A stretch of DNA of 64,000 nucleotides from Harriotta raleighana (Eukaryota). Positions 8,873 to 64,000 of this stretch are shown in pieces. Location of the stretch: the NCBI GenBank assembly GCA_050575255.1, contig JBNZDD010013660.1:3070594-3134593 (forward strand). Direction: 5' to 3'. The notes beneath the pieces were generated by a model that was given only the letters and a program-made list of their open reading frames with translations, made no database searches and was not told the origin of the DNA. Numbering within the stretch: the stretch's first letter is position 1; each line of letters opens with the position of its first letter. The translations under genes were made by a program, and so were the position numbers.

Positions 8873-9123
8873 GTGAGTTTACAGTCTGTGGGCACAAGGT
8901 TGAATGAAGTCTGTGTGTAGCTTTTTATTGGTCACTGAAAACCTGACTTTGTGGATAATTCTGTGTTAAGAACAAATAGTAAAGATATCAATATAAAAGT
9001 TGAGCTATTTCTATATTGCGTTAAAATCTTATCAGGAGTATTTTCATAGAATCTAAATCAAATTTGTAATATGGAAGTCACAAGCCTAAATAAAATACTC
9101 AAATGTTTTTGTTGTTTGGTTAG

Positions 9124-9309
9124 GTCTGTCCAATGAGCATGTCCCCGCATGTAGACCCTAATAAATCAGAACAGGAAATCTGGGAGGAATTCTCCATGAG
9201 TTTCACACCCGCAGTTCGAGAGGTGGTGGAATTCGCAAAACGTATACCTGGATTCAAAGATCTATCGCAACATGATCAAGTCAGCTTACTTAAAGCTGGG
9301 ACATTTGAG
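9124..9309 (+). CDS. NR1D2: NR1D2 coding exon 6 (LBD, VCPM...FAKRIPGFKDLSQHDQVSLLKAGTFE; includes the heme-ligand Cys of HLVCP)
   Basis: ttag| and |gtatgt, 186 nt. Confidence 0.97.
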
Positions 9310-9712
9310 GTATGTACATGCTTTTTTGTTTGTTTGCTTTAGCACATGAAGCTTTGTACTTGTTTGAAGCTTTGTACTGATTCTACACTCATGATTGTAG
9401 GGTTGGGGTTGGATTTTGACAGTTCTGAGTCAGAAAGTTTGGGTTCAAGCCCCACATTGGGACTTTGAACTCAGGCTGGCAGTGCAGTACTGTCCTGGAG
9501 TCTTTTACGCCCCACAATTGATGCCAAAGTGTGTGTGTGTGTGTAATATATAGTTATATATATATATATATCTATATATAAAAATTGTACGGGTTTGAAA
9601 AATACTTGAACAAAAAAAGCCTATTATGCTTTTCTTGTTGTAAAAGTTTATGAATGTTGAATCATGCAGCTTTTTCGCTGATGTGTTAATGGATATCTGT
9701 TTCTGTTGGCAG

Positions 9713-9923
9713 GTGTTAATGGTGCGGTTTGTGGCTCTGTTTGATGTGAATGAGCGTACGGTCACATTTCTCAGTGGAAAGAAATATGGCATTGAAGAGT
9801 TGCGTGTGCTGGGGACAGGAGATTTGTTGACTGCCATGTTTGAGTTTAGTGAGAAGCTGGGTACACTTCAGCTCAATGAAGAAGAAATGAGCTTATTCAC
9901 TGCTGTCGTCCTGGTTTCAGCTG
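9713..9923 (+). CDS. NR1D2: NR1D2 coding exon 7 (LBD, VLMVRF...FTAVVLVSA)
   Basis: ggcag| and |gtaagg, 211 nt. Confidence 0.97.
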
Positions 9924-10316
9924 GTAAGGAAAAGATTGTGTTCTAAATAGGTGGTTCATAGAACAATTTTTATGCCTTGTATATTGAGATGTAATTCTTG
10001 CTTCCAAATGTGTCAAAATAAAACTATAATAAAAGGAAAAGCATACCCAAGATGATCAAGCCATAAATGCCAGTTATTATCCAATAAGTAACTTTTAAGG
10101 GGAAACACTGTTGTTCCCCAATCTCTAAAATGGAGGTAGGCACAGTAGACAGTGGGATCCTTGGGACAGACAAAGACATTACAGTAAGATGGTTTAAAAA
10201 TTTAAAAAGATTTTTTTGAATGTTGAAAGTGTTATTTAGTGGAACTGTTTTCCACACAAATGTACTTGGTGAATATTAATGAGATTATCAATGTTTTCTT
10301 TGTTTTTATTTCCTAG

Positions 10317-29550: not shown

Positions 29551-29829
<279 letters not shown>

Positions 29830-30144: not shown

Positions 30145-30435
30145 GATAATAAATTGCATTTGCTATAGTGTTTTTCACATCTTCTAGATGTTTCAAAGGC
30201 TTCACAGAATACTCTGCAAAGTGAATTGACTATTTTTGTGGACGAAATGCAGCAGCTAATTGTACACAGCAGTGTCCCACAAACAGTAGTGAATTGAGTG
30301 ACAAAATTATTATTATTTCTTGAGGGATTATTATCATGGGTGTGGGAAAACTCGCCCAAGGTATTGACCTGCCAGGGATCAAACCCAGGTCTCTCACTTG
30401 TGAGGTGAGTGCTCTAACCACTGAGCTACAGGACT
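30145..30435 (-). mobile_element. tRNA-headed SINE (short variant)
   Basis: Reverse strand reads CCTGTAGCTCAGTGGTTAGAGCACTCACCTCACAAG head, then Deu core, then L2-like tail. Confidence 0.85.
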
Positions 30436-35956: not shown

Positions 35957-36215
35957 CTGAAGACATCAAAAGCACAGCCTGGAGCAGAGCGACTTCACTG
36001 TCGTCCAAGTTGAATGCAGACAGAGATATTCCGAGATCAAAGATAGCATCAGATACTACACCAAGGCCTCCGTTTTTTAGCTGTTCCCTCTTGACAGCTA
36101 TCTCACCATTTAGCGTTAAAGTTTCACTCTCAGGGTCATAGCGGACAGCTGCCCTGAGGGACATGATTTCCATACAGCAGCCCTTCAGAAGGATTATCTG
36201 GTCTTCACATGGCAG
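35957..36215 (-). CDS. THRB: THRB LBD exon ([38 protein letters not shown]...QAVLLMSS)
   Basis: tctag| and |gtacaa, 259 nt, phase 0/1. Confidence 0.98.
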
Positions 36216-37738: not shown

Positions 37739-38116
<378 letters not shown>

Positions 38117-38830: not shown

Positions 38831-39036
38831 CAGAAATTTACGCTTCTGTTTCCAATGGTTTCCTTGGGCATTGGTTGCCACATGCGCCTCTGTTACGACT
38901 CTGATAAGTTCCCACTCCTCTTGTGAAGGCTCCGGTTTGGTTACAAGGTGTTTTATCACTTCCTCTTTGCGCCTCTTTTCTCGGTTTTCCTCTATTAGCT
39001 TGCGTTTCGCTAACCGTTTACCATCATCCAGCACCA
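38831..39036 (-). CDS. THRB: THRB hinge exon ([26 protein letters not shown]...WKQKRKFL)
   Basis: aatag| and |gtaagc, 206 nt, phase 1/0. Confidence 0.98.
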
Positions 39037-40920: not shown

Positions 40921-41217
<297 letters not shown>

Positions 41218-41921: not shown

Positions 41922-42128
41922 TATTCACAGAAAAAGTGTGAACAAATCAATATAGAATAGTAATAATTCTTACATTTGATAATAGTGCTTCTCATGTTGG
42001 GAACGCTTCACAAGATATACTGTAACATGCAGTGACTGTTTGCCAATGTGCACACAGCATTGACTCACAAACAGCCAGGAAGTCAGTGGACATTTTTGTT
42101 TGTATACCAATGGCTCTGCATCATGCTA

Positions 42129-42296
<168 letters not shown>

Positions 42297-43316
42297 CTAA
42301 CCATCGTTAGAGTAATAACGGATGGTAACATTGAAGTCTGCTTGTAAAATCCTACGCTCAGCTACCTGGCCATGAAAAATCACGGAATAGTATTTGTGGA
42401 ACAATGCATTTATACAAATACATTCAACAAATTTCCTACAATGACAATAAATGTAACAATCATACATTTCTAAACAGAATATCTCCTCTCTTTGATTGGC
42501 TGCGAGGATCCATTATGAACGGAGCTTGGGCAGTTCTACCCCAATAGGCCTGCTGGGCTGGCCTGTCCCATTCCAGCACTTCACTGCTGCAGAGTTCGCT
42601 CAGGCGACTCAGGGTAGCTGGGGTGAGAAATGGAAAGCATCCGTAAAGGGTGCTCTTCTGAGGTTGGAGCAGAGTAGATGGAGGTTTACACAAGATCACA
42701 AAAGAGCTTAGGACGAAGAAGGTTGATCTCATCCTTCCACCCTCCCATCACAGCATCAAGCAGTTTGTTAAATGTATCCTCGACCATGCATCCTGTTAAG
42801 CAAGTGACACTGAAATTGTCTGTGTGAAATGTAAAAATGTAATTTCTAATAATATACAGTACTTCACTTTCAACATAAAAAGTATCCATTCCCCCCAAAA
42901 TAATAATAATAAAAAATGCTTATATTGGCTTCTGATCTGAATGTGGCAGCTACTTTTGGAGATTATAGACCAAGACTGGTGTGAAATAGTGAAGAATGTT
43001 ATGACATCTCGCATAACACGCAAGACACTAATCCACTCAATAAAATGCATTTAGTGCCATTCACACAAAGCCAGATGGCAAACCATTTATAACACTACAC
43101 AATCGGATTTTCAATGTAGAATTTCCCATAGAAAAGGAATTTCATTTGTCATTTTTTTTTGTAAATCACAAAATATACAAAATATTTGTCCAAAAAATTA
43201 ATTATTTCTCCCAGTGAAATACTAGAGATTTTTCTATACTTAGGAATGACCTGTGCTCACAGTTGCTTATACCTGCAGTAGTTGAAAGTCAAAGCACATA
43301 TGTTTACTAGTAAATA

Positions 43317-43935
43317 CAGTAAAACCCTGTTTATCCGTGACTCGATGAACCGGAAACTCAAAAAAAAGTCCAGATTCAATAAACCGGAAATTATCCGGCA
43401 GAATAGTGATGATGCATTTAATGAATCGATTGGCGCACCCAATTACTGGTGCAGGTACTCAGCTGGCCGCTAGTCGAGCCTAAAATCATGCTACTACCGT
43501 TTTTAAAAAAAGTTGCAATACTGCCTTTTTTTTAAAAAAAGTCGCCCTACTGCCACTTGGTTTTCCTCCCATGGCGGCCATTGCAGAAGTTAAGTATAAA
43601 TAATAAAGTACTAATACAATATTCTGTATTACAGTATCTGTTATTAGTGTATTTAGTCTATTATTTGTATAGTATTGTTCAACATTTACAATAAAGTAGC
43701 CATACAATATTCTGTTATTACAGTATCTGTTATTACTGTATTTACACTATTATTTATATGGTACAGTGTACAACATTTACAATAAAATACCTATACAATA
43801 TTGTTATTATCTGTTATTATTTAGTCTATTATTAATATGGTATGTGTTAAATAATTAATAATTTAAATTAAGTTAAAAAAAGTTCAACCGGAAAACTATT
43901 TAACTGCCACTGGCCAGGTCCCGTGGGTGCACAAC
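43317..43935. mobile_element. Related Tigger-like MITE with an internal AT-rich tandem duplication
   Basis: Begins TA|CAGTAAAACCCTGTTTATCCGTGACTCGATGAACCGG; unit of about 90 bp repeated at 43615-43830; right end degraded. Confidence 0.7.
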
Positions 43936-46149
43936 TAATCAAACCACCCTTAGCAAGGCACAAATTACTGCAATCTCCCAAGATTGGCACTTCCCAACCT
44001 ACACCTAATCCTCTTAAGGAATTAGGTGAGCAGGTTGCATCTTATCCGGGAAACGAGTATGTATTCTGTTGCAAAACGCAGCAATTTCCATGTGTAGGTG
44101 GGATGCATGGAGTTTTCGGTTTGGTTTGGATACTCTTAAGTAAAGTGATGGCTTTCCACATGAGTCAGACACCCGTTTGACAACAAAAATATCATCGTTC
44201 AGTAATAATTGATAGTTGCTAAGTCTTCAATAGGCTCCTTTTGTCTGGGCATAATTATAGTTCCACGAAATCCCAATCTACATTACAACAGGGGGAAGAG
44301 GAGGATCAAGAGTGATTGCCAGTCAACACTTCTGCCTCACGACATCTTGGATCACATGACTGGGTGGTATTATTGTCCATGTGCATGGAAAAGCGACATT
44401 CTCCGTCAGCACCACAGCAACTTCAAAGTGCAATATCACACTTCACGGGTCTTGTCTCATTTCAAAACTGTGTCACTGAACGGTGTTGCAAGTTTGAAGT
44501 ACAACATTATGCTTTGATGTAATGCAGGCGAATGGAGCTGGAATTCTGCACACTTTTTTGATAACTACAAACAACAACAACAAAATTACATTAATAGAGC
44601 ATCTTTCACGTTGGGAGGATGTCCCAAGGTGCTGAACAATCAGGTTGGGACTCAAGGTTTTTTTTAGAAAGAAAATGTAGGAGTCCACATCCCAATCTCT
44701 AAGCAATTAATACCTGTTATAACTGGGTTCTCTACTGTATTTTTAAAAAACATGATACAGTATTGATTGGAGATTATTGAAGAGAATTAACAAGCTCCAC
44801 CGATTACTCAAATCTTAAATCTTTCCAGAGAATAAATCCCAGATTGGCAATAGTGTCCATCAGGGAAGGGAAGCTGCCATCCTTATCAGTCTGACATAGA
44901 GATATAATTCCGGTTCCAAATGACAACTTAATGGATCTTAAGTTGCCTCTTAAGATCCAAGGAAGCCATTCAATTGTAAGAAAACTGCTAGAGAGATGTT
45001 CAATAACTAAAACCTGTATGGACCAATTGCTAGTGAACCAGGACCTACATCAGAACAAGATACAGGGCAGCAGTTATAAAAATAATAATCCTTGCATTTG
45101 ATATAGCACATCATCGAGTCTTTAAGATATCTGAAAGCAATTATAGGTAATTCTGTATATTGTAAAGTGAATTGATTGTGTATTTTGTGAGTGAAACGCA
45201 GCAGTCAATTTTGCACAAGTTTCCCACAAACAGCCGTAGATGAGGGACTGCATTTTGTTTTAGTGTGATTTTTACCCCGGGAAAGTGATCTGTCAATTAA
45301 CTAACAACCGGGTTTCTAGGACGAGTGGCAATGGTCTAGGAAGTCAGTTTCACAGAGTATTTGTGTTGTCAATTGTGGGTAAGATCAGAGTGGTTTCAGA
45401 ATTGCAGTCATTGCTATTGAACTTTGTACTAGTTTGAATAATAATTAAAATGCTTCCCTTACATTTGATATATAATAGTGGGATGCCATGGATGGGATCT
45501 GTAATGTATACCTGAATGGGAATCACCTTGGTTTAGCATCACATCTGAAGAACAGCATGTCTAATAATAACAATGCAACAGTCCTCCCATTACTGTCCTC
45601 CCATACCTGCCAAAACTTCAGCTTGAATTCCAGGTATGGGGCTTGAACCCACAATCTTCTAACTCAGGGGCGAGAGTGCTATCAACTGAGCCAGGCTGAT
45701 ATATAAAACCACATCTGCTGGAGAGACGTAACTTAGGGAGTTTAAATTTTTTTTACAATATGGATGAGAAAAGGAATGTAACCCAGTCACCGACAATCAA
45801 AGCCTTTATAGTTAACTGATTTTGATGAGAAATGGTGACTGTAGAATTGAAACAAGATGACTCTCCAGAGCTTAATGTAATGTTATCTGCGGTAACACAT
45901 TGAAGACTTCCTTTCTGTGCAAACCATAAACTGGAAAAACAGTGTTTTTAAGGTTTTAGTGAAGATATTTTATAGAATACTGTACATACTCACTGTCCTT
46001 TTGTGGATATCAGACTTTGTTCCAGTTGATTGTCTAAACTGATTCACTTATACAATATAAACCTCTGTCTATAAAGTTTTAAGGCATCAATACTCAACTT
46101 ACTTAACATTATTTCCCGGTTCTAATTTGGGGGAATTGTTTGGTTTGTT

Positions 46150-46415
46150 TTGAATAAACAAATCGAATTTGTGTTTAAAATAATCAACACATCCTGTTTC
46201 AACGGGAGTCTGTTCCACAGATTCACTATTTGCTCGCTGAAGTAGTGTTTGCGTAGATTCACCTTGTATTTACCCAACTTCAATTGCAAGCCGTGTCCTC
46301 TGGTTTCACTCTTCTGGATTAGTTGAAACAGCCTGTCATGATCTATTTTGTCTAGCCCTGTTAGAATCTTAAAGAGAGCAATCATGTCGCCTCTCAATCT
46401 TCTCTTTTCCATCAT
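46150..46415 (-). mobile_element. CR1 LINE ORF2 C-terminal fragment
   Basis: EKRRLRGDMIALFKILTG...TRGHGLQL...YFSEQIVNLWNRLP is the diagnostic CR1 C-terminus. Confidence 0.92.
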
Positions 46416-46981
46416 TAAAATGTCCAATACTTTTAAAATCACAGACACTGCAGAGCGAATATATGAATGGACGTTGTTAATTTGGTCACTCATTGTATGA
46501 CTATTTGTGGGATACTGCTGTACGCAATTGGCTGCTGCATTTTAATTCACTTTACAGTTATTCTGTGAAACGCTTTGAGACATCTCGAAGATGTGATAAG
46601 GCACTATATCAAATGCAAGATTTATTAATATTACATATGAATGAATATTGACTGAATAAAATATTTAATTACATTATATTTAGTTAGTTAGTTGAATACC
46701 AAACATGTCAACATTACGTGTAATTTTAAGCACCTTACACAAGTCCCCGCCAACATGCACACAGATCACATGCACAAAGTCCAGGATATACAGAGAAATC
46801 CACAGATTTATGATCTGACATTCCGTCACCAGGAATATACAAGCATCAACTTTGGGATTGTGCATTTCAGAACTACACCTAAACTGGGGAGATTCACATC
46901 CACAACACTTAACTGCCGATCTATCATGAACATGATGAAAAGGAATAGAAGATTCAACATAGCTCTAAGACAAGGGCATAC

Positions 46982-47290
46982 CTTTTTTGAAGGTTGATGA
47001 CTGGTCTTCATAATAACCATCATTTTCATGTGTAAAATACTCAGCCTGGCAAAGGCTGTTCATACTTGTGGACCTGTTACAATAAGCGCTCTAAACCGGT
47101 TTCCAGGGTAACTGGAAGGCTGGTTTACTACCCAGGTTGGATCGATGCAAATATTGCTATTGTGCAGAGTCTGAACATCGTGACGATTGTAAACCTGGTT
47201 ACCTTACATACAATAACTTGGAGGCTGCATTTAGCAATCATTACTGGCTGCTATTGTTGCATCATATGTTTCCTGCATTGAGTAGTTCAT
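46982..47290 (-). pseudogene. THRB: Disrupted TRbeta2-specific N-terminal exon of THRB
   Basis: Reads MNYSMQETYDATIAASNDC*MQPPSYCM*GNQVYNRHDVQTLHNSNICIDPTWVVNQPSSYPGNRFR, then after a frameshift ...MNSLCQAEYFTHE...QSSTFKKG|gtatgc. Colinear with mammalian TRbeta2 (MNYCMQEIYE...NCYMQ...WAVNQP..SYPGNMFK...QPEYFTEE...QKKG, recalled). Located upstream of the GYIPSY exon as expected. Confidence 0.9.
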
Positions 47291-47430
47291 TTGATTGCTG
47301 TAGTTTCACACACCTCAAAATAGATCTATATTATCTATCTGCTCTTTATGAACAGGTGAACGTAACACAATGTACCTGTACATTGGTTTTACAATACACA
47401 TTTGCATTATTTTACATCGCTGTATGTGCG

Positions 47431-47463
47431 AAATCCCTTTTATATTCAGGTGCTCCTAATCCC
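47431..47463 (-). promoter_or_regulatory. Putative TRbeta2 proximal promoter: TATA box plus K50-homeodomain (CRX/OTX2) site
   Basis: TATAAAA on - at 47444-47438, CTAATCCC at 47456-47463 and AAATCC at 47431-47436, about 150 bp upstream of the TRbeta2 ATG. Confidence 0.6.
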
Positions 47464-49316
47464 CCATCCTCTCCCCCCCCAAACCCGCACCAATTAAACA
47501 AACGAGGGATCAGATTTATGGTAAGTAATGGGGACTGATTCTCTGAAAAGTGGACAGACAGGTAGACACTACCACTGGACAGCTAGCTCATGGACAAACA
47601 ACGTCTGAAGCTTTGGGTGGGTCTCACAGAATTCTTCCCTAATGCACATACAGGGTGCAAAAATGATAAGATTTGTACATCTAAATGAAACTTTTCTTGT
47701 TCATTTTCAATAAAATTCACTCAGCAGCACAAATCACAACCGACAATGAGCGATGGTTGACATCTGCAATTTAAAAAAATACATTGTTAAAAAAAGAAAA
47801 TTTGTGATTATTTGCCATCGTTTAATCCATTATCTGGGACGACCTCCCAATGTGAAAGGTGCTATACAAGTGAAAGGCGCTATACAAGTGTAATTTTTGT
47901 TGTTGATGTTATTATCAGCTATATTGATTTTTTAAAACGATTATTAGTTGATTATAAAGTAGCCCAGGAGCAGAGCTATCAATCTTCACACTTTACTAAA
48001 TAAAACAATTTATTCTACTGGCTAACAACAATACAAATACTGGCTAAAAACAATACAGTTAATGCGCTTGGAATTGAATTAGGGAGAGGAAAAGCAATGT
48101 GAACTGTAGCGTATGTCAAATCCACAAAATGAAATGGTCATTATTAGATTACACTGAAAGACTGCATACAGCACTTGCAACAATCCATTAACTGTATTGA
48201 TTGGGTTTAAGAGAATTATCTATGTGCTAAATTAGCTCAACAAAGGGGATTATTCTAAGAGTCTCCGTGGCATCCCCTAACAGATAAAACGTTCATTTTC
48301 TCAGGTGGAAAATATTTCTGCTTTCTGAATTTCATTTTTACAAAATGCAAAAGATTATTACTGAATTAAATAATAATTAGTTAACGTTTCTGAGATTGTA
48401 CAGTCCAAATACGACCCAGGTGCAGCTTTGCCGGCACTTAAAGGCAATTTGTTCTGATTATTTCTTTGCCTCAAGGAATGTTTGACATAGCAATGATTTG
48501 GTTGCATTGCTCAAATAGCACACCTGGCTGCTTTTCGGTGTCAAGTATGGAACTATGACCCTACGATGAACCTAGAGATCCACAATCTTATAATACTACA
48601 CTGATTTGAAAGGAAACCTTTTAGAATGGAACAAAGTATGTGTAAATAGCACAAAATGAAGTGTCTCAATTACAATACATTAAAAATGTCATTGCGCTTG
48701 TGAAAAGCTTGATGTGAAATGGCTTTCATGAAGACAGTCGATCCAATAAAAGATGAGCAAATAAGACTTGAAAGCGATCAACATCAGGGGCACGCTGAGG
48801 TAAGGAACAGCTAAACCTTCAGAAATCAGATAACCAGTTTAACTTTTTTATGAGGCGAAATCCAACATAACGCATTAATCTTTTCTATGTCTCCTACAAG
48901 TCTTGAGGTAAAGTGATGTTTGGTTGAACACTTGTTCTCCAGCTAAATTACAGCAACATGAAGCATAAACGCGGTTTCATGATAAAGAAAGGAGGACTAA
49001 CGTAAGAAACACACTGCTCTATTCTTTCTATAAGTATTAGTGCTGCTGCTACGTTTGTCAGACGACAAATATAACAGAAAAATGCTTTTGGGAAGCTGGC
49101 AATTTGTGAGTTTTAAACAGTGAATTCAACTTACAGAAAATAAACTAAGGTGCAATGTTAACACCATGCAAGTAGATTTTTAAAGTTTCCAAACATTCTG
49201 CAATTTAAGAACATTGAAGTGAAAATACATAGTTTTGAATCCAAATTAAAAATTGTAATAAAACCATGTCCACCCAAAACCTATTTCTGCTAAAGGTTTA
49301 TATTTTAAGACATTAC

Positions 49317-49544
49317 CTTTATAACTTCTCCCATTATTTTCACCAGCTGTCAGTGGCCATAAAGGCAGCACTTCATTTCTTCCATTGTATCAAGTTGCAG
49401 CAAGGACCGAGTGTCTGAAATGGTGGTCAGATTGTGTGCTGTAGTGCTTTGCTCGAGTCCTCTTCCTACTTCTCCCCTTTTCAGGGATTCCAAGAATATT
49501 TGGATGATATTTGTAGCAATTCTCATTGTGAAAGGTTATGAACC
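49317..49544 (-). pseudogene. Possible decayed TRbeta1-like A/B-domain exon
   Basis: Strong phase-1 donor (TAT AAA G|gtaatg, ...SYKG); one TGA at 49392-49390 in an otherwise open frame; weak by-eye similarity to the mammalian TRbeta1 exon; pyrimidine tract ends in TG instead of AG. Confidence 0.35.
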
Positions 49545-51420
49545 CAACAGAAACAGAAAAGGTACTTGTGCTGTTTTCCAAAGTGCACCTGAAAGGCTTG
49601 GATAACTTCTTGCTCAGCTGTGGCATCCGAGGCAATAGGTTCTGTCTATATTCACTTGATGTGCTGCCGTCCGCCTGTATCTCAGCCTTGAAGCACTGGT
49701 CTTTCTAGTTATCATTCCAATAACACATCATTTATTTCAGCCAAGTGCACTCTGCTTCTATGTTGATTACTTTGCTCATGCAGTGCCTACTTCATACTAC
49801 ATATTTTGTGAAAATAAAATTTGTGAATCACTGGCTTTCTAATGCTTTCCTTCAACACATGAGCGAGAGTTCACCTGCATCATCTGGAGTACTTCCACTT
49901 CAGTGTGGGTTCAGAACCAAGTTTTCAGCTAATTTATTTACTTAGACTTAATGATCATTTGAGGACTTTGAGTTCAAAGCTGGCCATGCACTATTTTTAG
50001 ACGCTAAGGACGCAAAACAAAATGGATTCAGCCTCAACTGATATGCCTTTATCGCAAGCTGTCCTGAAACACACCCGGTCACCTCAATGTGACATCCCTT
50101 GGAACCTTTCAGTGATTCCTGTGTTTCTCTCCAGTAACTTTGAATGAATAGAGAACAGTTTGTTGAGAGATTTTACAGAGGTAACAATGCGCTGGTATTT
50201 ACTGGAAAGGAATGATTTTCAACTGGTTTCACATAAGAAATCAAGCATTACAGAACTCTGTTGAGTTGGGACAAAGCAGAAAAGAAATTCCAAGTTCACT
50301 CTTAAAATGCAACCAACTGGAATTTTCGCTACTTTCTACAATATAAAAGAATTGAAGTACAATAATAATTTTTTCAATATTTTCAATGAACATCATTCTA
50401 ACAAGATACCACTCAAGAAACAAATACAAATATGTTCTCTCAACCACATAAGAATCTGATATTTTTCTTTTCTTCTCCTCTCACATTTAGTTTAGTTTAG
50501 TCTCACATTTAGTTTAATTTTTATTTTGCATTTCTAAGTGAGAAACTCCACTCCACTTCAGTTGGCATTGGCATTACCTTTACAACTGTAAAAGCTTTAC
50601 ATCTTTCCTGACACGCAAACCTCTTTACAATTGAATATCAAACCTAGAGATCTTTTGAAATCAAACACATAATCTCAGGAAGTCTGGTTTTGAAATAACG
50701 ACTTGTATTTTAAACTAAATTCATTTCTAACATGGCAGTTTTGCTAATACTTGATATATGTCCTCCGGACATGAAAGATGCTCTATAAATATAATTTTGT
50801 TGTTGTTATATGTTTGACAAATTTTTGACAAAACAATTTTGTTCAAAAGTGGAGTTTGACCAGCACATTGAATTTATCCAGATGTGTACCCACGAATGAC
50901 ATACAGTAGACGTGTGTGTGTTCGTGTAAGTGTTCAACTCCAAACATCTATGCATTGCATAGAAGCATAGAAATTTAGACACAGTAGGAGGTCATTTGAC
51001 CTTTTGTATTAACCTCAGTGTTTACCCTTGTAATAAAGGCTCCACTCAATACATTAAACATTTAATATAATAATCCTTGCATTTGATACAGCCATTAAGC
51101 TGATCACAATGTCACTGAATTGAGGTCCCATTGTACATTAATTACTAAAGTGGTGAAGGGAAGGAACGATCCAATGTAAACAGACTTGGTAACTTCAATT
51201 GTGCTAAATTCCTGTTCAGGAAACTAAAGCTTCAATGCTGATACCTCTCAGCTTCCCAATCAAATTGCCTTCTGCAAGCCAAACTCAGATAGTCTTTACA
51301 TGATAATGCTGCTTTTTGAAGCCAGAAATGATTGTGCTGAGAACCACTAAATAAACCAGCCATTAAAACTTGCAGCATGCATTTACACACTTCAATATGG
51401 TTGTTCTTAGAATTTAAAAA

Positions 51421-52059
51421 AATAATCCTTGCATTTGATATAGGGCCTTATACTATCGAGATGTCTCAAGGCACTTTACAGAATGTACTGTAAAATGAAT
51501 TGACTGTATTTTGTGGGTGAAATACAACAGTGGCTTAGACACCAGAATGAATAATAATAAACAAATTCATGGATTATTATATTATTATAGTGAAAAGGAG
51601 TGCACTTGTATCTTATGTTTGGATATCAAAATGCATTTTTGTGAATAAGATGATTTCCTCTCAATTAAATCATACGTCTGCCTTAATTGCGCCTGTAAGA
51701 TATTTGAATGGCAGGTACTTTAGTGGCAGGTAGATCGATAGGATTTAGGCAGCTAATGATGTAATTAAACTTCAAACAAGTGGATAAAAACATTCTTAAA
51801 ATACCTATTGATTGACAAACAATGTCACGTTTAATCATTCGGAAGCTTTTCTTTATGAATAGAATCATTTCAGGTTTGGTTTTGGATATGTCTGTTGTAT
51901 TAAAAAAAAAGCGCTTGCTGAAGTGTTGGTACTGTGGATTACAGGGATTATTAACAGCAGAAAACATAAATTTTTAGCTGTTATTGTATTAGTGCATTGT
52001 TTGAAATCCATTGGGGGGTAATTGTACTTTGTAGTTTTTGAAAAACTGTAAACTTTATT
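51421..52059. repeat. Left arm of a diverged inverted repeat of about 600 bp (right arm 57248-57840)
   Basis: Reverse-complement matches such as TTTGGATATCAAAATGCATT / AATGCATTTTGATATCCAAA and TTAATTGCGCCTGTAAG / CTTACAGGCGCAATTAA. Confidence 0.85.
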
Positions 52060-52666
52060 GTCGTCTTGTTCGTTTTTGTGACCTCTCTATCTAAGGCTGG
52101 TTAAATCTTTACTATGATTGATGCTTTCAATTTTTTGATACCATGACTGTTACAAATTTGAATTGATTGTAGGAAACCTATTGCTTTTAGATGGGGAGTA
52201 GATTTGCATAGATTCTGCCGAATGTTGTCAGAGTCAGCTTCTTAGAGCAGTGGTGGGTAGCATTTATAAATCGCTAACATTACAAATTTTCTTGAGTGTA
52301 TATTTCTTGGTTTGTGCCCCAAATATTCAACCAAGCAGAAACCGAAAACAGTACTGATGGAACATGAATTCACCAAGACTTGTGCAAAGATTTGTCTGGA
52401 GTGGGGGATGTTTCTTGATGGCCACAGGTTGGCCACCGGTGTCCAAGAGAGTAATATACCAGATAACCTTCAATGTGATCCCTGGTCTGTGGTGAATCAG
52501 TTGATTTCTGTCTAGGGGACACTTCAAATATTCAATCAGCCTAGGTGCCCTGGGTTGGGCAGGAGTTAAATCAGTCAGGGATTCTGTTCCAGAGATACTA
52601 TCCATCATCGTGAGGTCCACGTGGCAAAGATCCAAACAAGTAATAATAATTCTTACATTTCATATA

Positions 52667-53056
52667 CAGTAAAACCTTGTTTATCCGTGACCCGATCAAC
52701 CGTGACTCGATTCAATTGCTCGACCCCCTCCCGGGACAAGACCCCATTCCAGAATTGCGAGTTTGCTCACTTTGCGTACGCGTGCAATGCATGTGCACTT
52801 AGTAAACTTACGCACTTAGGCTTTTTACCGATCAGTAAAAAATGCAGTGTTACCGATTTTTCCCCTGACTCTGCTAGAATGCTTTGTTGGTAAGTGTCCA
52901 TACAATATTCTGTTACTATGTAGTATATTATTAACATGGTATGTTTTAAAATGAGTTACATTTTTATGTTGGGTTTTTGGCAACTTCTCCCTCGTTAATC
53001 CGGCATTGTCAATTAGTCAACCCCCCCGAGGGTGCTGGATAAACAAGGTTTTACTA
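52667..53056. mobile_element. Tigger-like MITE inserted in a SINE tail
   Basis: TA|CAGTAAAACCTTGTTTATCC ... GGATAAACAAGGTTTTACTA|TA; SINE tail continues on both sides. Confidence 0.88.
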
Positions 53057-54989
53057 TAGTAAGAAGATGCCTTATTGCATCTTCAAGACATTTCTAAGTG
53101 CTTCACAGGTTATACTGTAATTGAGTGAATGTATATTTTCTAGGTGAAATATATAAATGCTAGGTGAAATGTATGCGTTCTTTAATGGTTAAAAGTACTA
53201 TGAATTGTACCATTAAGACATCAATGATTGAAGGATTGCGAAGCTGTGTCCAGCCGTGCTGTGTAATTTCAGCATTGTCTGCTGACTGCTTTAGCAATAC
53301 TTGTATCTCTTTGTACAAATGTCCACCATTGCTGAAAGCAATTTCTATTCTTTTGTATTTCTCTGCTCCCAAGGTTCAAAACATCAAAAGAGCAAAGGCA
53401 AGGAATGTGATTCATTGTAGGAAATGTACAAAGGGAACATTGCTTAGTTTGCAGCTGGTTGAATCCGTGTTCCAAAGAAAAATGCTGGATGTACACAGAA
53501 AGTATCTCAGTCTCCGTTAGCGATTTGCAGGTGACCTTCATCAGAAATGGAACAATTGGTTTGAAGGAGGCTTTTATAGGTTTTAGGAGTAATAAAAAAG
53601 ACCATTCACCACAAGTTAATGACACTTATTCAGCGCCTTTCATGTAGAATAAATGCCCCAACATTCAGAAAGATTATGGAGAATGCCAACCAGAGAAGAG
53701 ATTTGATGGTTTTAATCAACTACAGTCAAAGAAATACATTTTTTAAATGACTTTGAAGGCTATGAAAGATGCCGGTTGAAGGGATTTCATAACTGCACAT
53801 TATTTTGAGATAGAAAAAAGATGTGTTGATCACTGACAACAACAACAACATTGATTTATATAGGTCCCTCCATGCCAGACGGCGTCTCAGAGTGCTTCAC
53901 AATAACGGATCCCGGGACTGAGCAGGGGCAGGGGTAGAAAGGTGAATAAAGGCGCGGTTGAAGAAAAAAGTCTTTAGCTGAGACCTGAAATTGGGAAGAG
54001 AGGGGGCGAGGAGAAGGGAGTGAGGAAGGGAGTTCGAAAGCCTCAGTGGGGTAGTGGCTGAAGGCACGGCTGCTTAATGATTGCTTGTGAAATATTGCTG
54101 TGTGCAATTGGCTGCTGTCTTTTTCTGCAAATACACAGTCTGAAAATGCGAATGGTACATAAAGTTGTGGAGAAGGAACCAATAAGGATGTTTGAAAGAA
54201 AAATATCCACATACCTGAGATAATTTAAGGTATGGGGAGAGGGAGAAAGGATTGGTCTTAAAAATTACCAAAATCTAATAAACAGATGAAACAGACTCAA
54301 TGGGATGAACGACCATCTGTTTATTAATGGTTTCCTATATTCCCCATAATATCGTAAATTAGGTCAAGTATTTGTAATTTTATGTGGGGCCCATGGTACA
54401 GTACTAGAACACATGATGTACCAAACCCTTTACTGGGATCATGCTATATAGGCTGAGGTTAGTGTTGGTGCTAAGCCATTTTCTGGTTTAAAATGGATTT
54501 TAAACCAGAAAATGGCNACCCTTTACTGGGATCATGCTATATAGGCTGAGGTTAGTGTTGGTGCTAATCCATTTTAAACCAGAAAATGGTTTAAAGACAT
54601 ATTAGCTCTTTATCTGTGACCACAAAATATGCAGTCAATTCACTTACAATCTATTCTGTGAAGCGCTTTGAAATGTCCCAAAAATGTGATAATATACTAT
54701 GTCAAATGCTAGGATTATTATAATTATTATTACAAATAATGCTTCCATCAGTCATGTGTTCATTTTATCTATTTAAAAACTAATCTTATCTTTATCTAAA
54801 AACTGAGCAGCGATTTTTGAATCTCCTAAAATATTGTAAATTATTGAGGAAAATCTGACTGGACTGATTATTCTTGACAGGCTGTAGTACAACTCAAGCC
54901 GTAAATAGACTGAAGCTGAGATCAGCATCTTTCTGTCATGCTGGACAATCTATTTATAGTAAGTGTATATATATTGTTACAATATCGCC

Positions 54990-56880
54990 TACGTGCAGGT
55001 TCGAGGATCTGAAGGCCTGCCTGATCAGTCTTGATGAAGAGAAAGCCTTTGGTGTCTCACAGATACATGATGAGGTACATTCCAAAATGGGTTTTCGGGA
55101 GGGAATACGCAGGCTGCTCTACCCAGACATCTGTAGCACAGGAACAATAAATGGGTACGAGACTGAGACGTTCCCCATCAGGTCGGAAGTAAGGTAGAGA
55201 TGTCCTCTATACCCCATCCTGTTTGTGTGTGGCATGGAACCCATTGCACAGGGACAAGAACATCAGAGGGCAGGCATGGCTCACAAGCCAAGACCTCGCT
55301 GCATATGGACAATCTCATCTTCTTTTGCCCAGACCAAAAATCAATGTTACTGTACGTGACCCAGGTCTGGCTTTTGACCAACAACAACATTACTACAGGC
55401 ACCAGAGAAGTCTTCCAAATGATCTGGGAGTCCAAGATGGATCATGTCGGCAGAGGCATGATGCAAAAAATCTCAGAAATCGGGGGAATAGGTGTCCCCA
55501 ATATAGCCCTGATCCTCATTGCCACCTTTCGGTGAAACTGCCTTAGACTATGCCTGCAGCCCTGCTACCCCGGCAACAAATGCCGTGATCTGCTGGGTTT
55601 CTGCCTGTACCTGGTGATAAGAAGGGTGGGTCTGGCAGAAATGCCTCGAAGCATTCCAAATAGTCGGAGTGTGCCGAAACACCTGCCCTATGCCGAGAAA
55701 TTCCTGAAGAACATTATCTTAGATCCCCGCGGAATGGTCCTCGCGATAGATAGTCAAAACAGCTTGAAAGGGGGAGAGAGCAGACCTGATTGCGAGTGAC
55801 CCTATGTCTGGCAAAATGCATCGTCACTGGCTTTGACCAACAACCACCAGGACACGGGCTGGCAATAAAAGCGGCCCTCCCCCTCAGTGCTTTCATGTAT
55901 GCAGAAGCGTGGTTTGTACCAGTCAGCAAGCTGCACTCGGGCCTGCTGCAGAGGNCGTCACTGGCTTTGACCAACAACCACCAGGACACGGGCTGGCAAT
56001 AAAAGTGGCCCTCCCCCTCAGTGCTTTCATGCAGAAGCGTGGTTTGTACCAGTCAGCACGCTGCACTCGGGCCTGCTGCAGAGACTAGGAGACCGTGGAC
56101 CACCTCTTCCTGGAGAGTTGTATGCAAAGGCGGTTTGGAAAATGGTGGAATGGATACTCTTGTGGATCATCCCTGAGAACGCGCTGTCATGTCACTCGGT
56201 GCTGTACTGCCTCTTCCCGGGCCCTTACAGCGAAACCCACATCGAGTGCGGCTGTGGATCATAAACAAGGTACAAGTGCCATAGTTCAAACTGGGTACAA
56301 GCCCTTTGGCTCCTGAACCAGGTGTATTTCTGGCAGAGCGAGGGGACGGTGAGAGGCCTGTGGACGTTAGGATCAGGGACTTTGTACTAAGGAACAAGCT
56401 GAAGTTCAGCTCAACCGTGGCAAAGGCCAGATGGACCTGACCCCGGTAGGAGATGCTTCTACACAAACTGCTCAGGGCGCATCCTCCTTGTAGCCCATGG
56501 GCACACCCAAACTTGACTGAAACAAACGTGAGGTTACAGAAGGACGCTCGAGATGTAACCAAAGAGAGTCCCGAAAATGTTAAACACTTGCACGTACAAT
56601 GCATATCGGGGCGGCTTCTGTAAGCGGCACATGTGTCTTATCAGGGTGTCTGAGAGGGCGCAAATAGGTGTGGCGTATACAGGGGCAACTCCCGACTGTT
56701 TTAAAGGTTGTCCTAGTAAACTGTGTGTACAACTCGTGTGCAGTGAAGGAATGTAGCATAAACAACAGATTGGTTTTGCATCGGGAGAAACAGAAAAATG
56801 TAACAGGAAATATTGTACATAGTTTTTGTTTGGGATTTCTGTGTTCTAAATATTATATTTATAAATGTATATATATTCAG
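54990..56880 (+). mobile_element. Degenerate Tx1/L1-clade non-LTR retrotransposon (RT, C-terminal zinc knuckle, 3' UTR)
   Basis: LISLDEEKAF; FPIRSEVR*RCPLYPILF (QGCPLSP motif); YMDN (YxDD); GGIGVPN; ETVDHLFLE; multiple frameshifts. Confidence 0.85.
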
Positions 56881-57247
56881 GAACAAAATCTCTTGCTGAT
56901 TTATCACTTGATCAATCCAGGACATGTAGGATAGTTTAGCCTAAATTAAGGGTACAGTCTTAAGTGTCCCTAGACTGAAATCAACCAATTAAGTACAAAC
57001 CAGGGATTTAAGCTTCATTAAACAACATAATAATAATAATCCTTGTATTTGATATAGTTTCTTATCATGTCTTCTCAACGTCTCAAAACGCTTCGTAGAA
57101 TATAGTGTAAAGTAAATTGACTGTATGTTTTACTGTATGTGGGTGAAATATGACAACAGTTATTGTATAAAAGGAGTTGGAAGTATCAATTATAATAAAG
57201 ATATAATCAGCCCAAGATAGAGATAGAGAAATAAGCAACAAAATTAA

Positions 57248-57840
57248 AATAAAATTTACAGTTTTTGAAAAACTACAAAATACAGTTACCCACCAATGGA
57301 TTTTAAACCATGCATTAATACAATAATAGCTAAGGATTTATGTTTCCTGCTGTTAATAATATTTGTAATCCACAGTACCAGTACTTCAGCATGCGTTTTT
57401 TTTAACACAACATATATCCCAAATTAAACCAGAAATGATTCAGTTGATAAAGAATAACTTCAGAACGATTAAATATGACATTGTTAGTCAATCAATAGGT
57501 GTTTGAGACTGTTTTTATTCCCTTAATTGAAGCTTAATTACATCCAATCTACCTGCCACTGATGTATTTGCCATTCAAATATCTCACTTACAGGCGCAAT
57601 TAAGGTAGAGATTTATCGTTTAATCGAGGAGAAATAATCTTATTCGCAACAATGCATTTTGATATCCAAAGCATAAGGTACAAGTTTACTTATTTTCATT
57701 CTGGCGTGTAAGCCACTGCTGTACCTGTATTTCGACCACAACAAACATGGTCAATTCACCTTACAGTTTACACTGTGAAGCGTCTTGAGACAGCTCGATG
57801 ATGTCATAAGGCACTATATCAAAGGCAAGAATTATTATTA
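57248..57840. repeat. Right arm of the inverted repeat (reverse complement of 51421-52059)
   Basis: See left arm. Confidence 0.85.
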
Positions 57841-58289
57841 TTAGTACTTGTTTGGATCTTTGCCAATTTGCGAAAAAAGATTGAGACAAACATTTCTAGA
57901 AAAAAAATTGCTGTGTTTTGAAATGATTATTTGAATAAAGCGATCTCTTTTTCAAAAACACAAGAATTAAAATAGCTGTTGTAAAAAAATTCCTGAATAT
58001 CTTTATGAAATGAAACCAATTATTAATTTCAACCTATTTGATCAGTTTGCACTCTGTGCTGTGACATGTAAATTAGACGAATAGACATGTGCAATGCAGA
58101 TTTACATCAATAGACAATTTCAAAGTTGCGACTCAATCAAAAGGTACAACTCATCATCAACTACAAGCTGTAGCTTAATATCATTGCCATCTGAATCCTT
58201 CTTGACCTGTGGTAAACCCCTACCTCTATTTTTGGTAATCAATATTGACAAGAGGTTATTAAAATATCATTATGTGTGTCAACCTGATG

Positions 58290-58770
58290 CAGTGATAGCA
58301 CTTTCGCCTCGAAGTCAGAAGGTTGTGGGTTCAAGCCCCACATTGTGATTTGGTATCACTTAGGTAAAGCAGACACTCCAATGCAGTCTGGGGTGGGGGG
58401 TGTTGTATTGTCCAAGATGTCATGATCTGGATGAGACATTAAACCAAGATCATGTGTGCCTGATCAAGTGGATGTTAACGATCCCACAACACTATTTGAA
58501 AAGAGAAGGGAGTTTCTCCAGAATCAAGAGACCTTAACGTCACCCATTTACAACATTGTCCTGGCCAATAAATCCCCAAATAAAATTGGTGACTCACTCA
58601 ATGGCCATTTGTGGGACATTGCTGCATGTAAAAACTCTGCTGTGGTTCATTCACAAAATACACATCGATCCACTTTATAGTGTATCCAATGAGGTTTGTA
58701 CAGCTTTAAGATGTCTCAACGATGTAATGAGGTGCTATATCAAATGCAAGGAATTATTACTATTATTATC
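58290..58770 (+). mobile_element. Older tRNA-headed Deu-type SINE (GGTTGTGGGTTCAAGCCCCAC head family)
   Basis: B-box-like head shared with copies at about 9420, 18330 (-), 38280 (-), 40780 (-) and 45640 (-); Deu core GGGACATTGCTG and L2-like tail. Confidence 0.78.
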
Positions 58771-59964
58771 CTGGGTGAGTGTCCATATCAACATCCTGGC
58801 TTATCCCCATTGACACCTTCCCCTTTGGTGAGGTTGCCCCACTTCGGTAAACATTCACCCTACCCCTAGCCCTGATCACCCCAATGTCATTGCTCTGATT
58901 TCCAAATCCCCCTCTTAGTCTGAACCTTTATTCCTCTGGATCCTTCTCCCTTTGAACAATTTCTTCTCTACCATCACTTTCACCTCTCTGTTAATAACCC
59001 CATCACCTATCACCTTCCCGATGCCATTTGTGCTAAAAATTCCTCTCACCTATCTTTCCTCAGCTTCTTCTCAGAGAGCATTGTCATCTTTGGCAATGTA
59101 ACCTCTCTTCATTCCTGCTTATTCTATCTCCTCAAACATCTCTGTTCTCCTCTTCAAACCTACTTCCACATCGATAGCCTCTCTCTTGAGTTTGTCATCC
59201 AAGTTTACTCCATCGCCTTGAGTTTCATTTCTGATAAGGGCTATTTCCTTATCGACCTCACTCTGCATACCCTTTACCATCTTCTTTGGGACGTCCCCCC
59301 AACGTGAAAGGCGCTATACAAGTGTAATTTTGTTGTTCTGCTCTTCCAGAAAAACAGTGCTTCATTCTCTCCTAAATGTACCCCACTCCACCTCACTAAA
59401 GATGTAGTGAACTTCAGTTACTATGCATCTAATCTCTGGAATGCTTTCACTCAGGCCCTCCATCTCACCCACTCTCCATATATGGCTTTAAATCCTGCCT
59501 AAACATTTACTTCTTTGCCCGCATCTCTGCTCACCTCTCCCTTCCCCTCTGCTCACAGCCCGAAATCTGTTCGCATGAAGAGCACTGAGTTATTATCCTA
59601 TGTGAAAACCTCTTTATTAAATACAATTGCAAGTTGTTGTTGTTGTGCAGGAAGTGACATTGACAGTGACTCCATGATTTAGACATTTTTTTTTANTGTT
59701 GTTGTGCAGGAAGTGACATTGACAGTGACTCCATGATTNAGACATTTTTTTTTAATTACACATGCTTTATGGTGGGCTGGAATTTTGTGGACCCCAAATA
59801 CTACCATATAACAGGTTCTACTGGATCATATTTCTCAATCCCCCATCAAACAACAGGCTTACATCGCATAGGAATATAGCTATTTTATCGCTGCTAAACG
59901 GACTCCAGAATCAAGAGACCTTAACGTCACAGGTGCCATTTACAACAGAACATCTTTTCAGTAC

Positions 59965-59983
59965 CTGACATACTGCTCGACAT
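59965..59983 (-). CDS. THRB: THRB start-codon exon, coding part MSSSMS(G); whole exon 60026-59965
   Basis: tttttccttacag| acceptor; ATG TCG AGC AGT ATG TCA G|gtactg; phase 1 fits the GYIPSY exon; resembles amphibian TRbeta MPSSMSG (recalled). Total spliced CDS 1125 nt = 374 aa plus stop. Confidence 0.9.
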
Positions 59984-61869
59984 TATGGATCTGTGAGCAT
60001 TCTGCTGCTTGTATTTGCCACACCACCTGTAAGGAAAAATTAGCCCATTATTATTGAATTCATTACTCTGTGTTCTCCTTTACGTTTGTACGGCTTAAGG
60101 AAAATTACTGTAAATGCTGAGTGTAAAAACTGTGCCTGAGTGTGCTGTGCTGAATCAACTCATGGGCAGTTTTTACTTCTCAAGGATAGAAATTGAGTTC
60201 AAATTGTTATGCAACTTGTTGTGGTTCTAATGTTACAACCGGAGAATAATATAATACTGTACTGAAGATTCACTGGATCTTTGACAATAGCAGTCTGCAG
60301 TAATGACAATATAATGGACAATCTAGCTTCTTTACCTTGGAAGCTGGTATTTGTGGGGTTAAAACTATCGCATAATATTCAGTGTGACCCCAGTATGATA
60401 CAAGTAAGTGTACAGTACAGAGACAATTAAAGCTGACAGTGCAGTTAATTGGACATCAAACAAATCACAAATTTTGTTATATCAAGAGTTATGTGGTAAT
60501 TTTCACTGTTAACACCATATAAAAGTCTTAGGAATATTAAAAAAAATGTACTTTGCTGTAGCAGAACATTGTATGAACTTCCGAACGTCTGAACAAGATT
60601 ATTGAAAGAAGTGATTTGCATTCTTAATAACCTTGTGCACATAACTTTGTACAATTACATAACCAGTCAGCATCACAGTTCAGTGAACAATTGATACATT
60701 GGCACTCAATGCAGATAAACAGACATGTGGATAACCAGTGTTTCACCCTGATCACCCAGGAAAAATTGGGTCAGTGGTCACATCATCATGATCTCTGTTA
60801 ATGCGTGGAGTCTCATAAACAATAACAACAACACCCACAAAATTACATTTATAAAGCACCCTTCACATCGGGAGGACATCGCAACCAAATTATAAACCCC
60901 CAAAGGGTTGAATTGCTCTACTTGTGTTCTACTTAAGTGATCCGGGCTGCTAGCTCATGTGAAGGGCGCTGATGTAAATGCAAATTGTTGTTCTGCCAGA
61001 TTTGATGACAGAAAATCATGAGTCTGATCACTTTATGCCTAAGGGATAGCATGGAGAATCAGCATCAGTAGGTCAGTTCTTTTTTTGCAGGATTTTAGTG
61101 CTAGATTTGCATTAATCGAACCAGTTAAAATTAAAATTAAAATAAATAATCTTAAGTCTTGTGATACAATATGTCTTCAAGTAGCACACCACAGAAGCAC
61201 TTTGTTTTATACAGTATTCATGTCAGGTTCAAATAGCACCACAAAGGAAACCTCCACAAGAAATAGATTACAACAGAGGTTGAAAAAAGCAACCATGTAT
61301 CAAGCTTAACGGAGCCTGAAATGAGTGTGAAATACTAATTCATTTTTTCATGGTTTACTTGATTCCTCAAATTGGATTGCTGCCTGATATTCACTTTGCA
61401 AAACCTATTTTCCAGTAATGCTACGTGTGATATATTTTCTGCAATTTGCACATGGTAAAAATATAATTCATTGAGACTGGTTTGATGAGATTTATAGGTG
61501 AAGCAAGGCTCCAAATACCCAGATTTCACTTTGGGGCCAACAACGTTGTGTGGTTCTCTGCAGTGTCCATATTTTCTGCTTTAATTCTCCTGCATTGTGA
61601 TGAATCAACATATCCTTAAAAACACATGGTGTATATGATCCAGCTGTTGATGTGCCAACAACCCCCCAGATAACATTGGTCATTCACTTTGTTTGAGGGA
61701 TGTTGTGGGCTAAATTATGCATCTCAACGGTTCGCCTGCTGAACATTTTCTTCAAGGATAAGGTTGCAAATTCCACAGTTAATAAGGTGTCAGCCTGGCT
61801 CAATTTGTAGGATTCATTTGGGACATCTAGGCTAATACTGCAATGCAGTGTTGAATCACTACCCTTAAG

Positions 61870-62055
61870 GGTGGTTATTGTAGCTCAGTGGTTAGAGCAC
61901 TCGCCTCGCAAGAGAGATACCTGGGTTATATTACCAGCAGGGCGAAATGTTGGGCAAGTTTCTTTACTCCACACGCCTCTGTTTACCAAGCAGTAAGTAG
62001 GAACCCGACTGTTAGTTTACTGGTGTATTGCTTTTCTAGGAATAATAATCTTTAA
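61870..62055 (+). mobile_element. SINE 5' half with tRNA-derived head
   Basis: TGTAGCTCAGTGGTTAGAGCACTCGCCTC followed by the same body as the 34665 copy. Confidence 0.85.
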
Positions 62056-62099
62056 AAAAATTATTATTAACAATAATAATTCTTGCAACGGACACAGTA

Positions 62100-62713
62100 C
62101 AGTTAACTCTCGTCGATCGCGGGGGTTAGGTTCCTGGAAAACTGCGCACTCAACGAAATTGGATTGGAGAAGCTTAAGAAGTACAGTAAAACCTTGTTTA
62201 TCCGGCACGCTCGAGGGGGTTGACTAATTGACTCTGACGAATAAACTGGGGACAAGTCGCCGAAAACCCAACATAAAAAATTAACTTATTTTAAAACATA
62301 TCATGTTAATAATAGACTACATAGTAACAGAATACTGTGTGGATACTTACCAAGAAAGCATTCCAGCACAGTCGGGAAAAAATTGGTAAAACAGCATTTT
62401 TTACTGATTGGTAAAGTTATAATATTTACCCAAGAATGCATTGCACGCGGGGCCAGCCAGCCGAGGAATCGTTGGCTTTAGTCAGGATCTGCCGGGCCTC
62501 GTCAAAAGTGCTCATGCGCATGGGACCAGCCAGCTGAGGAATCATCGGATTTAGTCGGAAGTTATCGGCATCCTCATCTGTGTGCATGCGCGCGGGGGTC
62601 AGCCAGCGTGTATACACAAGTTTTGCGCGCGCTGCCCAAAAATTGATGCTTTTATTTCGTCGCATATACTTGAATTCGCAATCGATAAAGTCGCGTTCAA
62701 CGAGGATTAACTG
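62100..62713. mobile_element. Tigger-like MITE containing a nested truncated MITE (62184 to about 62415)
   Basis: TA|CAGTTAACTCTCGTCGA ... TCAACGAGGATTAACTG|TA; inner TA|CAGTAAAACCTTGTTTATCCGG. Confidence 0.85.
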
Positions 62714-63344
62714 TACATTACACTTCAGGAAAATGTCTCAAAGACCCTCACAGGATATACTGTAAAGTATAGCTGCAGAGCAATTTGCAGATGAACACAG
62801 CTGTCAATTTGCACACAGCAATGCCCCACAAACAGTCACAAAAAAATAATTAAAAGAAATAATCAAACTTATTTGAAGGATTGTTGGTCAGGAAAATGGG
62901 AGAAACCCCCTTTTTTCATGAATAGTGCCATGGGATCTTTAACATCCACATGAACAGTGAGATGAAAACTCAGTTTATCTTCTCAACTGAAGGATGGTAC
63001 CCCGCACGTTGCAGTACTCCCCTGTATATTTTTTAACCTTTACTTCTTCTTCCCTCCCTCCCTTCCCCCCTTCCCTCTTACCATGTTGTGCCCACAAATA
63101 TACAGTCAATTTTTCCTACTTTCCTTCCCCCAACCCCTCCCCCCACTCTCTGATCCCTACTTGACTGTACAGCGCCTTAGGACGTCCTCCCATCGTGAAA
63201 GGCGGTATATAAATGTAATATTGATTGATTGATTAATTGATTGAATCCACTTGTTGATTTGATTTAATTCCAACAATTATTAAATACAAGAATACATGTA
63301 CATTGGAATATTAATCTTAACCATACAAATTCAATGTCCACCAC

Positions 63345-63965
63345 TAATAATAATCTTTGCATTTGATACAAATGAGATGTCTCGAACCACTTCACAGAAT
63401 ATACTGAAACGTGAAATGACTGTAGATTTTGTGGGCTAAACGCAACAGTCAATTACACACAGCAGTGTCCCACAAACAATCATGAATTGAGTGACCAAAT
63501 TATTATAATTTTTTTTGAATGGATTTATTATTACAGGAAAAGTGATCTATCAATTGAGTAACAACGTATNCAAACAATCATGAATTGAGTGACCAAATTA
63601 TTATAATTTTTTTTGAATGGGTTTATTATTACAGGAAAAGTGATCTACCAATTGAGTAACAACTCGTCTTACAAGCGTGAGACCTGTGTTTGAATCCAGG
63701 CAGGTCAGAGCGAAACCTTGGGGAAGTTTCCTTACTCGACATGCCTAATAATAATCCATCCAAAAAAATCCACAATAATAAAATTGGTCATTTAAATCCA
63801 CGACTGTTTGTGGGACATTGTTGTGAGCAATTGGCTGCCACGTTTCGCCCACAAATATATACAGTCAATTCACTTTACAGTATATTCTGTGAAGCGTTTT
63901 GAGACATGGATAAAATGTGAAAAGCACTATATCAAATGCAAGGATTATTTTTATTATTATATTAT
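63345..63965. mobile_element. Two SINE copies in opposite orientation (63345-63660 on -, 63665-63965 on +)
   Basis: Deu core and L2-like tail present in both orientations. Confidence 0.8.
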
Positions 63966-64000
63966 TATATATATAACAACCTATTTACTGCTGGGTAAAC

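Follow-up and report, generated by a model that had tools for sequence, protein, structure and literature searches.

The stretch of Harriotta raleighana DNA analyzed here (64,000 nucleotides, nt, of contig JBNZDD010013660.1, assembly GCA_050575255.1; hereafter the window) carries on its minus strand six shared coding exons of THRB, the gene of thyroid hormone receptor (TR) beta, and, inside the same gene and on the same strand, a 309-nt stretch at 46982-47290 that lies 4.7 kilobases (kb) upstream of the first zinc-finger exon (42253-42153) and resembles the start exon of the isoform TRbeta2. According to two studies of this receptor (PMC10076699; PMC7332105), TRbeta1 and TRbeta2 differ only at their N-termini, TRbeta2 being specified by a single 5' exon with its own promoter and occurring in a small set of tissues (pituitary, cochlea and retina). 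The upstream stretch of the window can no longer be read from its ATG to its donor, and we file it as a relic of a TRbeta2 start exon and not as a working member.

The six shared exons, searched one by one against the sequences of PDB and without a spliced model, are all open and all bordered by AG and GT. They comprise the first zinc-finger exon (42153-42253, minus strand, 101 nt), with 25 of 26 aligned residues identical to the TR beta DNA-binding domain of PDB; the second zinc-finger exon (41070-41217, minus, 148 nt), with 47 of 49 residues identical to the TR DNA-binding domain 2nll_B; the hinge exon (38831-39036, minus, 206 nt), whose best matches are TR beta chains (37/46 identical by manual count); a first ligand-binding exon (37931-38077, minus, 147 nt; 46/48 identical to TR beta) and a second one (35957-36215, minus, 259 nt; 81/86 identical to its top chain, a TR alpha); and the last coding exon, including the stop codon (29551-29795, minus, 245 nt; 74/80 identical to TR beta-1). 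TR beta chains are the top PDB match for five of these six exons, with 80-96% identity to human TR beta, and for the second ligand-binding exon TR alpha scores 162 bits versus 159 bits for TR beta. Such conservation suggests that the six shared exons are under strong constraint. A preliminary description of this DNA, made from its letters alone, had counted seven other THRB coding exons as intact; six of them are indeed open with the expected borders, and the seventh was not reproduced.

Two small peculiarities were observed in these exons. The first zinc finger has a Ser (agc, 42204-42206, minus) instead of the Gly of PDB TR beta chains right after its second zinc-binding Cys, the sole difference in 26 residues, and no change at this codon appears among the differences listed for the two relatives compared below. 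The last exon (29551-29795) encodes one extra residue, an added Asn, compared with human TR beta chains.

A 5' coding exon of TRbeta1 type was also looked for. A scan of 47300-64000 for an ATG start, phase 1, a final G and a good donor confirmed none and gave a single weak candidate, 62441-62351, which was rejected. Two open stretches at about 49470-49584 and 52450-52610, both on the minus strand, have what we take to be the look of TRbeta1-type N-terminal coding sequence; a donor reading A|gtagga would allow the first of them to end in phase 1.

The upstream exon and its lesions

The first two letters of the first zinc-finger exon complete a codon, so that the exon needs a partner ending in phase 1, and the donor frame of the upstream exon leaves precisely one letter. 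Its further identification comes from protein similarity. The open piece of 47 amino acids (aa) at 47203-47063 was searched with phmmer against 1.84 billion representative proteins, with five matches at the cut-off of E<=0.001. Four of them were set aside as long proteins matched in many stretches (P0003, the sole one inspected, is a tandem repeat). The fifth, P0005, is an intact exon-like open reading frame (ORF) of 104 aa that matches with an E-value of 3.1e-5 and 54% over 37 residues. When P0005 is in turn aligned to the window with tblastn, it covers the whole upstream exon in two frames, the ATG frame at 47278-47090 (26/63 identical, with both in-frame TAA codons inside) and the donor frame at 47108-46977 (19/46 identical), with a joint E-value of 6e-16 in the 64-kb window and an identity of 41% in both the 5' and the 3' part. 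Like the upstream exon, P0005 ends in K-K-G at the donor point; unlike it, P0005 is open throughout. The same search found no second copy of the exon in the 64-kb window, no other locus scoring better than an E-value of 0.2.

Other searches around this exon were negative within their ranges. Among proteins of 0.55-1.75 times the query length, a range that full-length receptors exceed, the 41-aa donor-frame piece found no relative and P0005 found only itself. Pfam assigned no family to P0005 or to either of the two open pieces, and the protein atlas held no usable match for P0005. The stretch presumably resembles the mammalian TRbeta2 N-terminus as well. Taken together, position, strand, donor phase and similarity to the intact P0005 support its assignment as a probable TRbeta2-type start exon. 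A 10-nt piece of the element ThrbCRM1, taken from a preprint on the little skate (bioRxiv 10.1101/2025.07.30.667746), was likewise sought as a sign of TRbeta2 regulation and dropped, because its nine matches in the window, versus 6.4 expected, are at chance level; inspection of the match upstream of the exon (50214-50223) brought nothing further.

The exon runs on the minus strand from the ATG at 47290-47288 to its last base, g46982, which is followed by g46981 and t46980, a GT donor that is still canonical (AAG|gtatgc). From ATG to donor it measures 309 nt, that is, phase 0. The ATG frame is interrupted by a first TAA at codon 20 (47231-47233), opposite a Tyr of P0005, and by a second one at codon 29 (47204-47206), beside a 2-residue alignment gap and opposite the R-E-D part of P0005; a further stop, TGA 47062-47060, comes after both. 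About 65 codons into the exon, one nucleotide has been lost on balance: the zone 47085-47098 has 14 nt where P0005 has five codons (from an N to the next common Y), and the wider interval 47098-47046, between the common motifs PGN and AEYF, has 53 nt versus 18 codons, a net change of -1. The sole frame that ends in phase 1 at the donor is the one counted from 47288, of 102 codons plus g46982, and it is closed upstream too, last by TAG 47093-47091 just 5' of the start of its homology. Hence there is no ORF from ATG to donor (two TAA, net -1, phase 0), and the frame has been broken by several independent lesions, two nonsense codons and one frameshift. Around the shift no base is repeated more than three times in a row, so that a homopolymer length error is unlikely; two substitutions and one indel outside a homopolymer are not the usual kinds of assembly error. 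These results bear out the preliminary description in most of its observations: the ATG at 47290, the TAA at codons 20 and 29, the 309 nt in phase 0 and the next exon needing phase 1 are all present in the window; the jump of the homology from one frame to another that it had placed near 47090 corresponds to the switch between the two P0005 alignments; and its three lesions are found in the assembly as two TAA codons and a net loss of 1 nt.

What the assembly shows is thus the set of lesions, the similarity to P0005, a fitting position and phase, and shared exons that are intact. We give a probability of roughly 70% to the explanation that this is a real isoform-specific pseudo-exon, whereby the TRbeta2 start exon of THRB has decayed and the shared part of the gene has been kept. 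Under this explanation, the exon would have retained its ATG, its donor and recognizable homology, and the two nonsense codons and the 1-nt deletion would close every frame from the original ATG, so a transcript read from the first ATG would yield peptides of at most 19 residues. As the TRbeta2 N-terminus would no longer be encodable, the receptor would have to come from other 5' exons, that is, the shared exons would be used through start exons whose existence we infer from shared-exon conservation. Because the exon is closed while the six shared exons are intact, the loss would be specific to one isoform. We further expect all members of the species to carry the lesions and none to make TRbeta2 protein, and the loss probably followed a relaxation of selection on TRbeta2-dependent functions, such as the specification of long-wavelength cones.

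Alternatively, the exon might have been remodelled rather than lost. It would then still supply the TRbeta2 promoter and the splice to the zinc-finger exon, and yield either a shorter N-terminus of some 27 residues or a 5' leader whose many upstream ORFs would hold translation down. Two routes could lead to the short N-terminus, a start at ATG 47063 or entry from an upstream exon through an AG at about 47073. The frame of this ATG (47061-47063, minus), alone among those of the ATGs in the exon, arrives at the intact donor in phase 1, after 27 codons; the ATG has an A at position -3, a Met of P0005 is aligned opposite to it, and the donor is canonical. Nevertheless, eight other ATGs come before it in the exon, all with short ORFs of their own, and the 3' part that would remain in use is no better conserved with respect to P0005 than the 5' part (19/46 versus 26/63, both 41%). 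We therefore regard remodelling as unlikely, although it is the strongest of the competitors of exon decay.

Reads, relatives and the weight of the evidence

The region 42000-47600 was compared at 80% likeness with raw reads (X11) and contigs (X1) from different samples of the same species, and with contigs of two relatives, organism B (X5) and organism C (X10), with at least three raw reads required for a difference to be listed. As judged from the depths of the bins, the conspecific contigs cover only about 47217-47347 of the exon region, which includes the ATG and the first TAA and leaves out the second TAA and the shift. The sole difference listed within the exon is 47279 T>C, seen in an X1 contig and in organism B, and both X11 raw reads agree there with the window. 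A second variant of the species, 42162 T>C, is synonymous in the zinc-finger exon and appears in three of four raw reads and one of two X1 contigs.

The contigs of the relatives allow a rough comparison of rates. The contig of organism B over 46673-47464 differs at 59 of 792 letters, with 60 gap letters, and that of organism C over 46831-47170 at 27 of 340 letters, with one gap letter; the exon makes up 309 of the 792 letters in the former and 189 of the 340 in the latter. These exon-spanning contigs thus differ by 7.4-7.9%, versus 5.6-10.8% for ten other unique intron pieces, a range that leaves out four pieces borne by a high-copy repeat at 46204-46527 (9-19% different). For the zinc-finger exon, the differences listed include only two in 101 nt (42162 and 42177), both synonymous by codon reading, and at least 26 in the adjoining 318 nt of upstream intron. 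The relic exon, which is only part of the contigs compared, therefore seems to bear no sign of constraint such as that on the zinc-finger exon. It should be borne in mind that a fast-evolving working N-terminus would look little different from a neutral exon.

Less probable than a remodelled exon is that the lesions reflect errors of assembly or consensus, or a null allele private to the sequenced individual, the TRbeta2 exon of the species being functional. The raw depth of 0.75-2.64x over the exon, the contigs of the species lying on about 130 nt of it, and a locus that is polymorphic (47279 T>C in X1; 42162 T>C in three of four raw reads) all speak in favor of this possibility. Against it, three lesions within 309 nt would all need to be wrong, two being substitutions and the third an indel away from any single-base run of more than three letters; both raw reads match the window at 47279, the sole listed exon position with raw counts, and the exon-bearing contigs of the relatives diverge from the window at the level of introns. 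The check in raw reads for which the preliminary description had called agrees with the window at that one position and fails to confirm the lesions base by base at a depth of 0.75-2.64x. Finally, chance resemblance, or an alternative exon other than that of TRbeta2, is very improbable, since, even if no named TRbeta2 sequence was aligned and this N-terminus is absent from the families of Pfam, a joint E-value of 6e-16 to a protein whose K-K-G end coincides with the donor of the window goes together with a strand, a position and a phase that all fit the zinc-finger exon.

Several observations weigh against the decay of the TRbeta2 exon as we propose it. The X11 raw depth over the three bins of the exon is 2.64, 0.75 and 1.37, and there is no independent confirmation of the lesions at the level of single bases. 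The contig of organism C places 341 letters (letters 5-345 of its record) on 340 letters of the window; the additional base, at some point within 46831-47170, could be the very one missing here, so that the frameshift may be young or private to the lineage of H. raleighana. P0005 is the sole comparator for the exon. The in-frame ATG 47063 could in principle give a short N-terminus. The absence of a TRbeta2 product is itself deduced, none of the ten runs over 42000-47600 being recorded as RNA. Finally, the view that the gene stays functional relies on the conservation of its shared exons, as no TRbeta1-type start exon was confirmed by the scan.

TRbeta2 and cone vision

The exon of the window can be compared with the TRbeta2 exon of mouse, human and zebrafish (Thrb/THRB), a single isoform-specific start exon upstream of the shared exons. 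Position, strand and donor phase are the same, and the difference is that the frame in the window is closed by two TAA codons and a net loss of one nucleotide. A functional parallel comes from the zebrafish trbeta2 CRISPR allele '6BP+1', for which a frameshift at codon 61 of the first exon is described as abolishing LWS opsin and red-cone responses (PMC7332105). As in the window, the frameshift lies in the isoform-specific exon and the other thrb isoform is untouched, according to the same study (PMC7332105); the zebrafish allele is engineered and has one lesion at codon 61, whereas the lesions in the window are natural and begin at codon 20. Because they start upstream of the zebrafish frameshift, the allele of H. 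raleighana should be null for TRbeta2. The requirement of this isoform for red cones is reported in zebrafish (PMC7332105) and, according to a title cited in PMC9894165, for green cones in mouse.

Losses of cone opsins or cone genes have been published for some cartilaginous fishes. A preprint on the little skate reports nonsense mutations in arr3, gnat2, pde6c and cngb3 and recovered no cone opsins (bioRxiv 10.1101/2025.07.30.667746); in the accessible portion of its text thrb is treated at gene level only, with no occurrence of 'beta2' (bioRxiv 10.1101/2025.07.30.667746). In Chimaera phantasma, Rh2 and LWS are stated not to be found as intact ORFs and to be kept in Callorhinchus milii (PMC12952989), and the portion of that paper available to us has no occurrence of 'thrb' (PMC12952989). 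According to PMC12361510, the retina may contain only rods in two or more skates. This decay is, like the one proposed here, a regressive loss of cone functions; it affects whole dedicated cone genes, whereas in the window it would affect one exon of a pleiotropic receptor gene. Given these published losses, it is reasonable to hypothesize, as the preliminary description had done for an animal such as a deep-water chondrichthyan, that the loss of the TRbeta2 exon may be linked to lost long-wavelength cones; the opsin loci themselves lie outside the window.

That a vertebrate lineage has dispensed with TRbeta2 altogether and retained THRB, so that decay of one alternative start exon would amount to a natural knockout of a single isoform of a nuclear receptor, is a stronger claim, to which we would give even odds. 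The kind of event is known, namely the decay of trait-specific coding sequence, and here it would be located at one exon of THRB. Like the preliminary description, which knew of no published report, we found none of TRbeta2 exon loss in the literature searched, most subscription journals and supplementary files lying outside the search.

The unit in which regressive evolution is usually assessed is the whole gene, and pleiotropic genes are expected to survive it (PMC7613276). An exon-level loss inside a conserved receptor would be invisible to gene-level screens; the preliminary description had raised this very point, and it holds for a gene with one closed exon and six intact shared ones. Such a loss shows how a pleiotropic gene can drop one tissue-specific function. 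If true, a natural TRbeta2 null would make it possible to test to what extent the programme that specifies cones has been dismantled in animals lacking the cones that need TRbeta2, and also whether the pituitary and the cochlea can do without this isoform. If, in addition, it proved to be paired with the loss of LWS and Rh2 cones, it would mean that a pleiotropic developmental regulator can shed a trait-specific module at the level of an exon, and that other isoforms can cover the roles of TRbeta2 in the pituitary and the inner ear.

Neighboring gene and repeats

Tail to tail with THRB, the window carries an NR1D2-like (Rev-erb beta) gene at about 4750-10000 on the plus strand. It is represented by zinc-finger ORFs (4752-4907 and 7762-7971, plus), a long variable exon (8282-8920, plus) and ligand-binding ORFs (9133-9342 and 9650-9946, plus). 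A search with the 212-aa ORF of the long exon started from 56 candidates and retained 28 proteins, of which the best relatives are only 34-38% identical; the named matches are from hamster (NR1D2), tarpon and squirrel.

The intron between the relic and the first zinc-finger exon contains very high-copy repeats at 43309-45365 and 46488-46674, with a raw depth of up to about 13,000 per strand versus about 1 in unique bins; their abundance is the same in organisms B and C. An inverted pair, 45077-45138 and 46572-46633, is 76% complementary. The intron that precedes the last THRB exon contains a transfer RNA (tRNA)-Val-like element with anticodon cac (30364-30435, minus), which is the only ARAGORN match in the window and is probably the head of a copy of a short interspersed element (SINE). 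The idea that the repeats of the window are the tRNA-Ala-headed CmiSINEs described from Callorhinchus (PMC5499810) was dropped, since ARAGORN gave only this tRNA-Val-like element. At the start of the window, a TG/CA-rich simple-sequence tract (1-1450) surrounds a run of 213 N at 300-512, and ten isolated N occur across the window.
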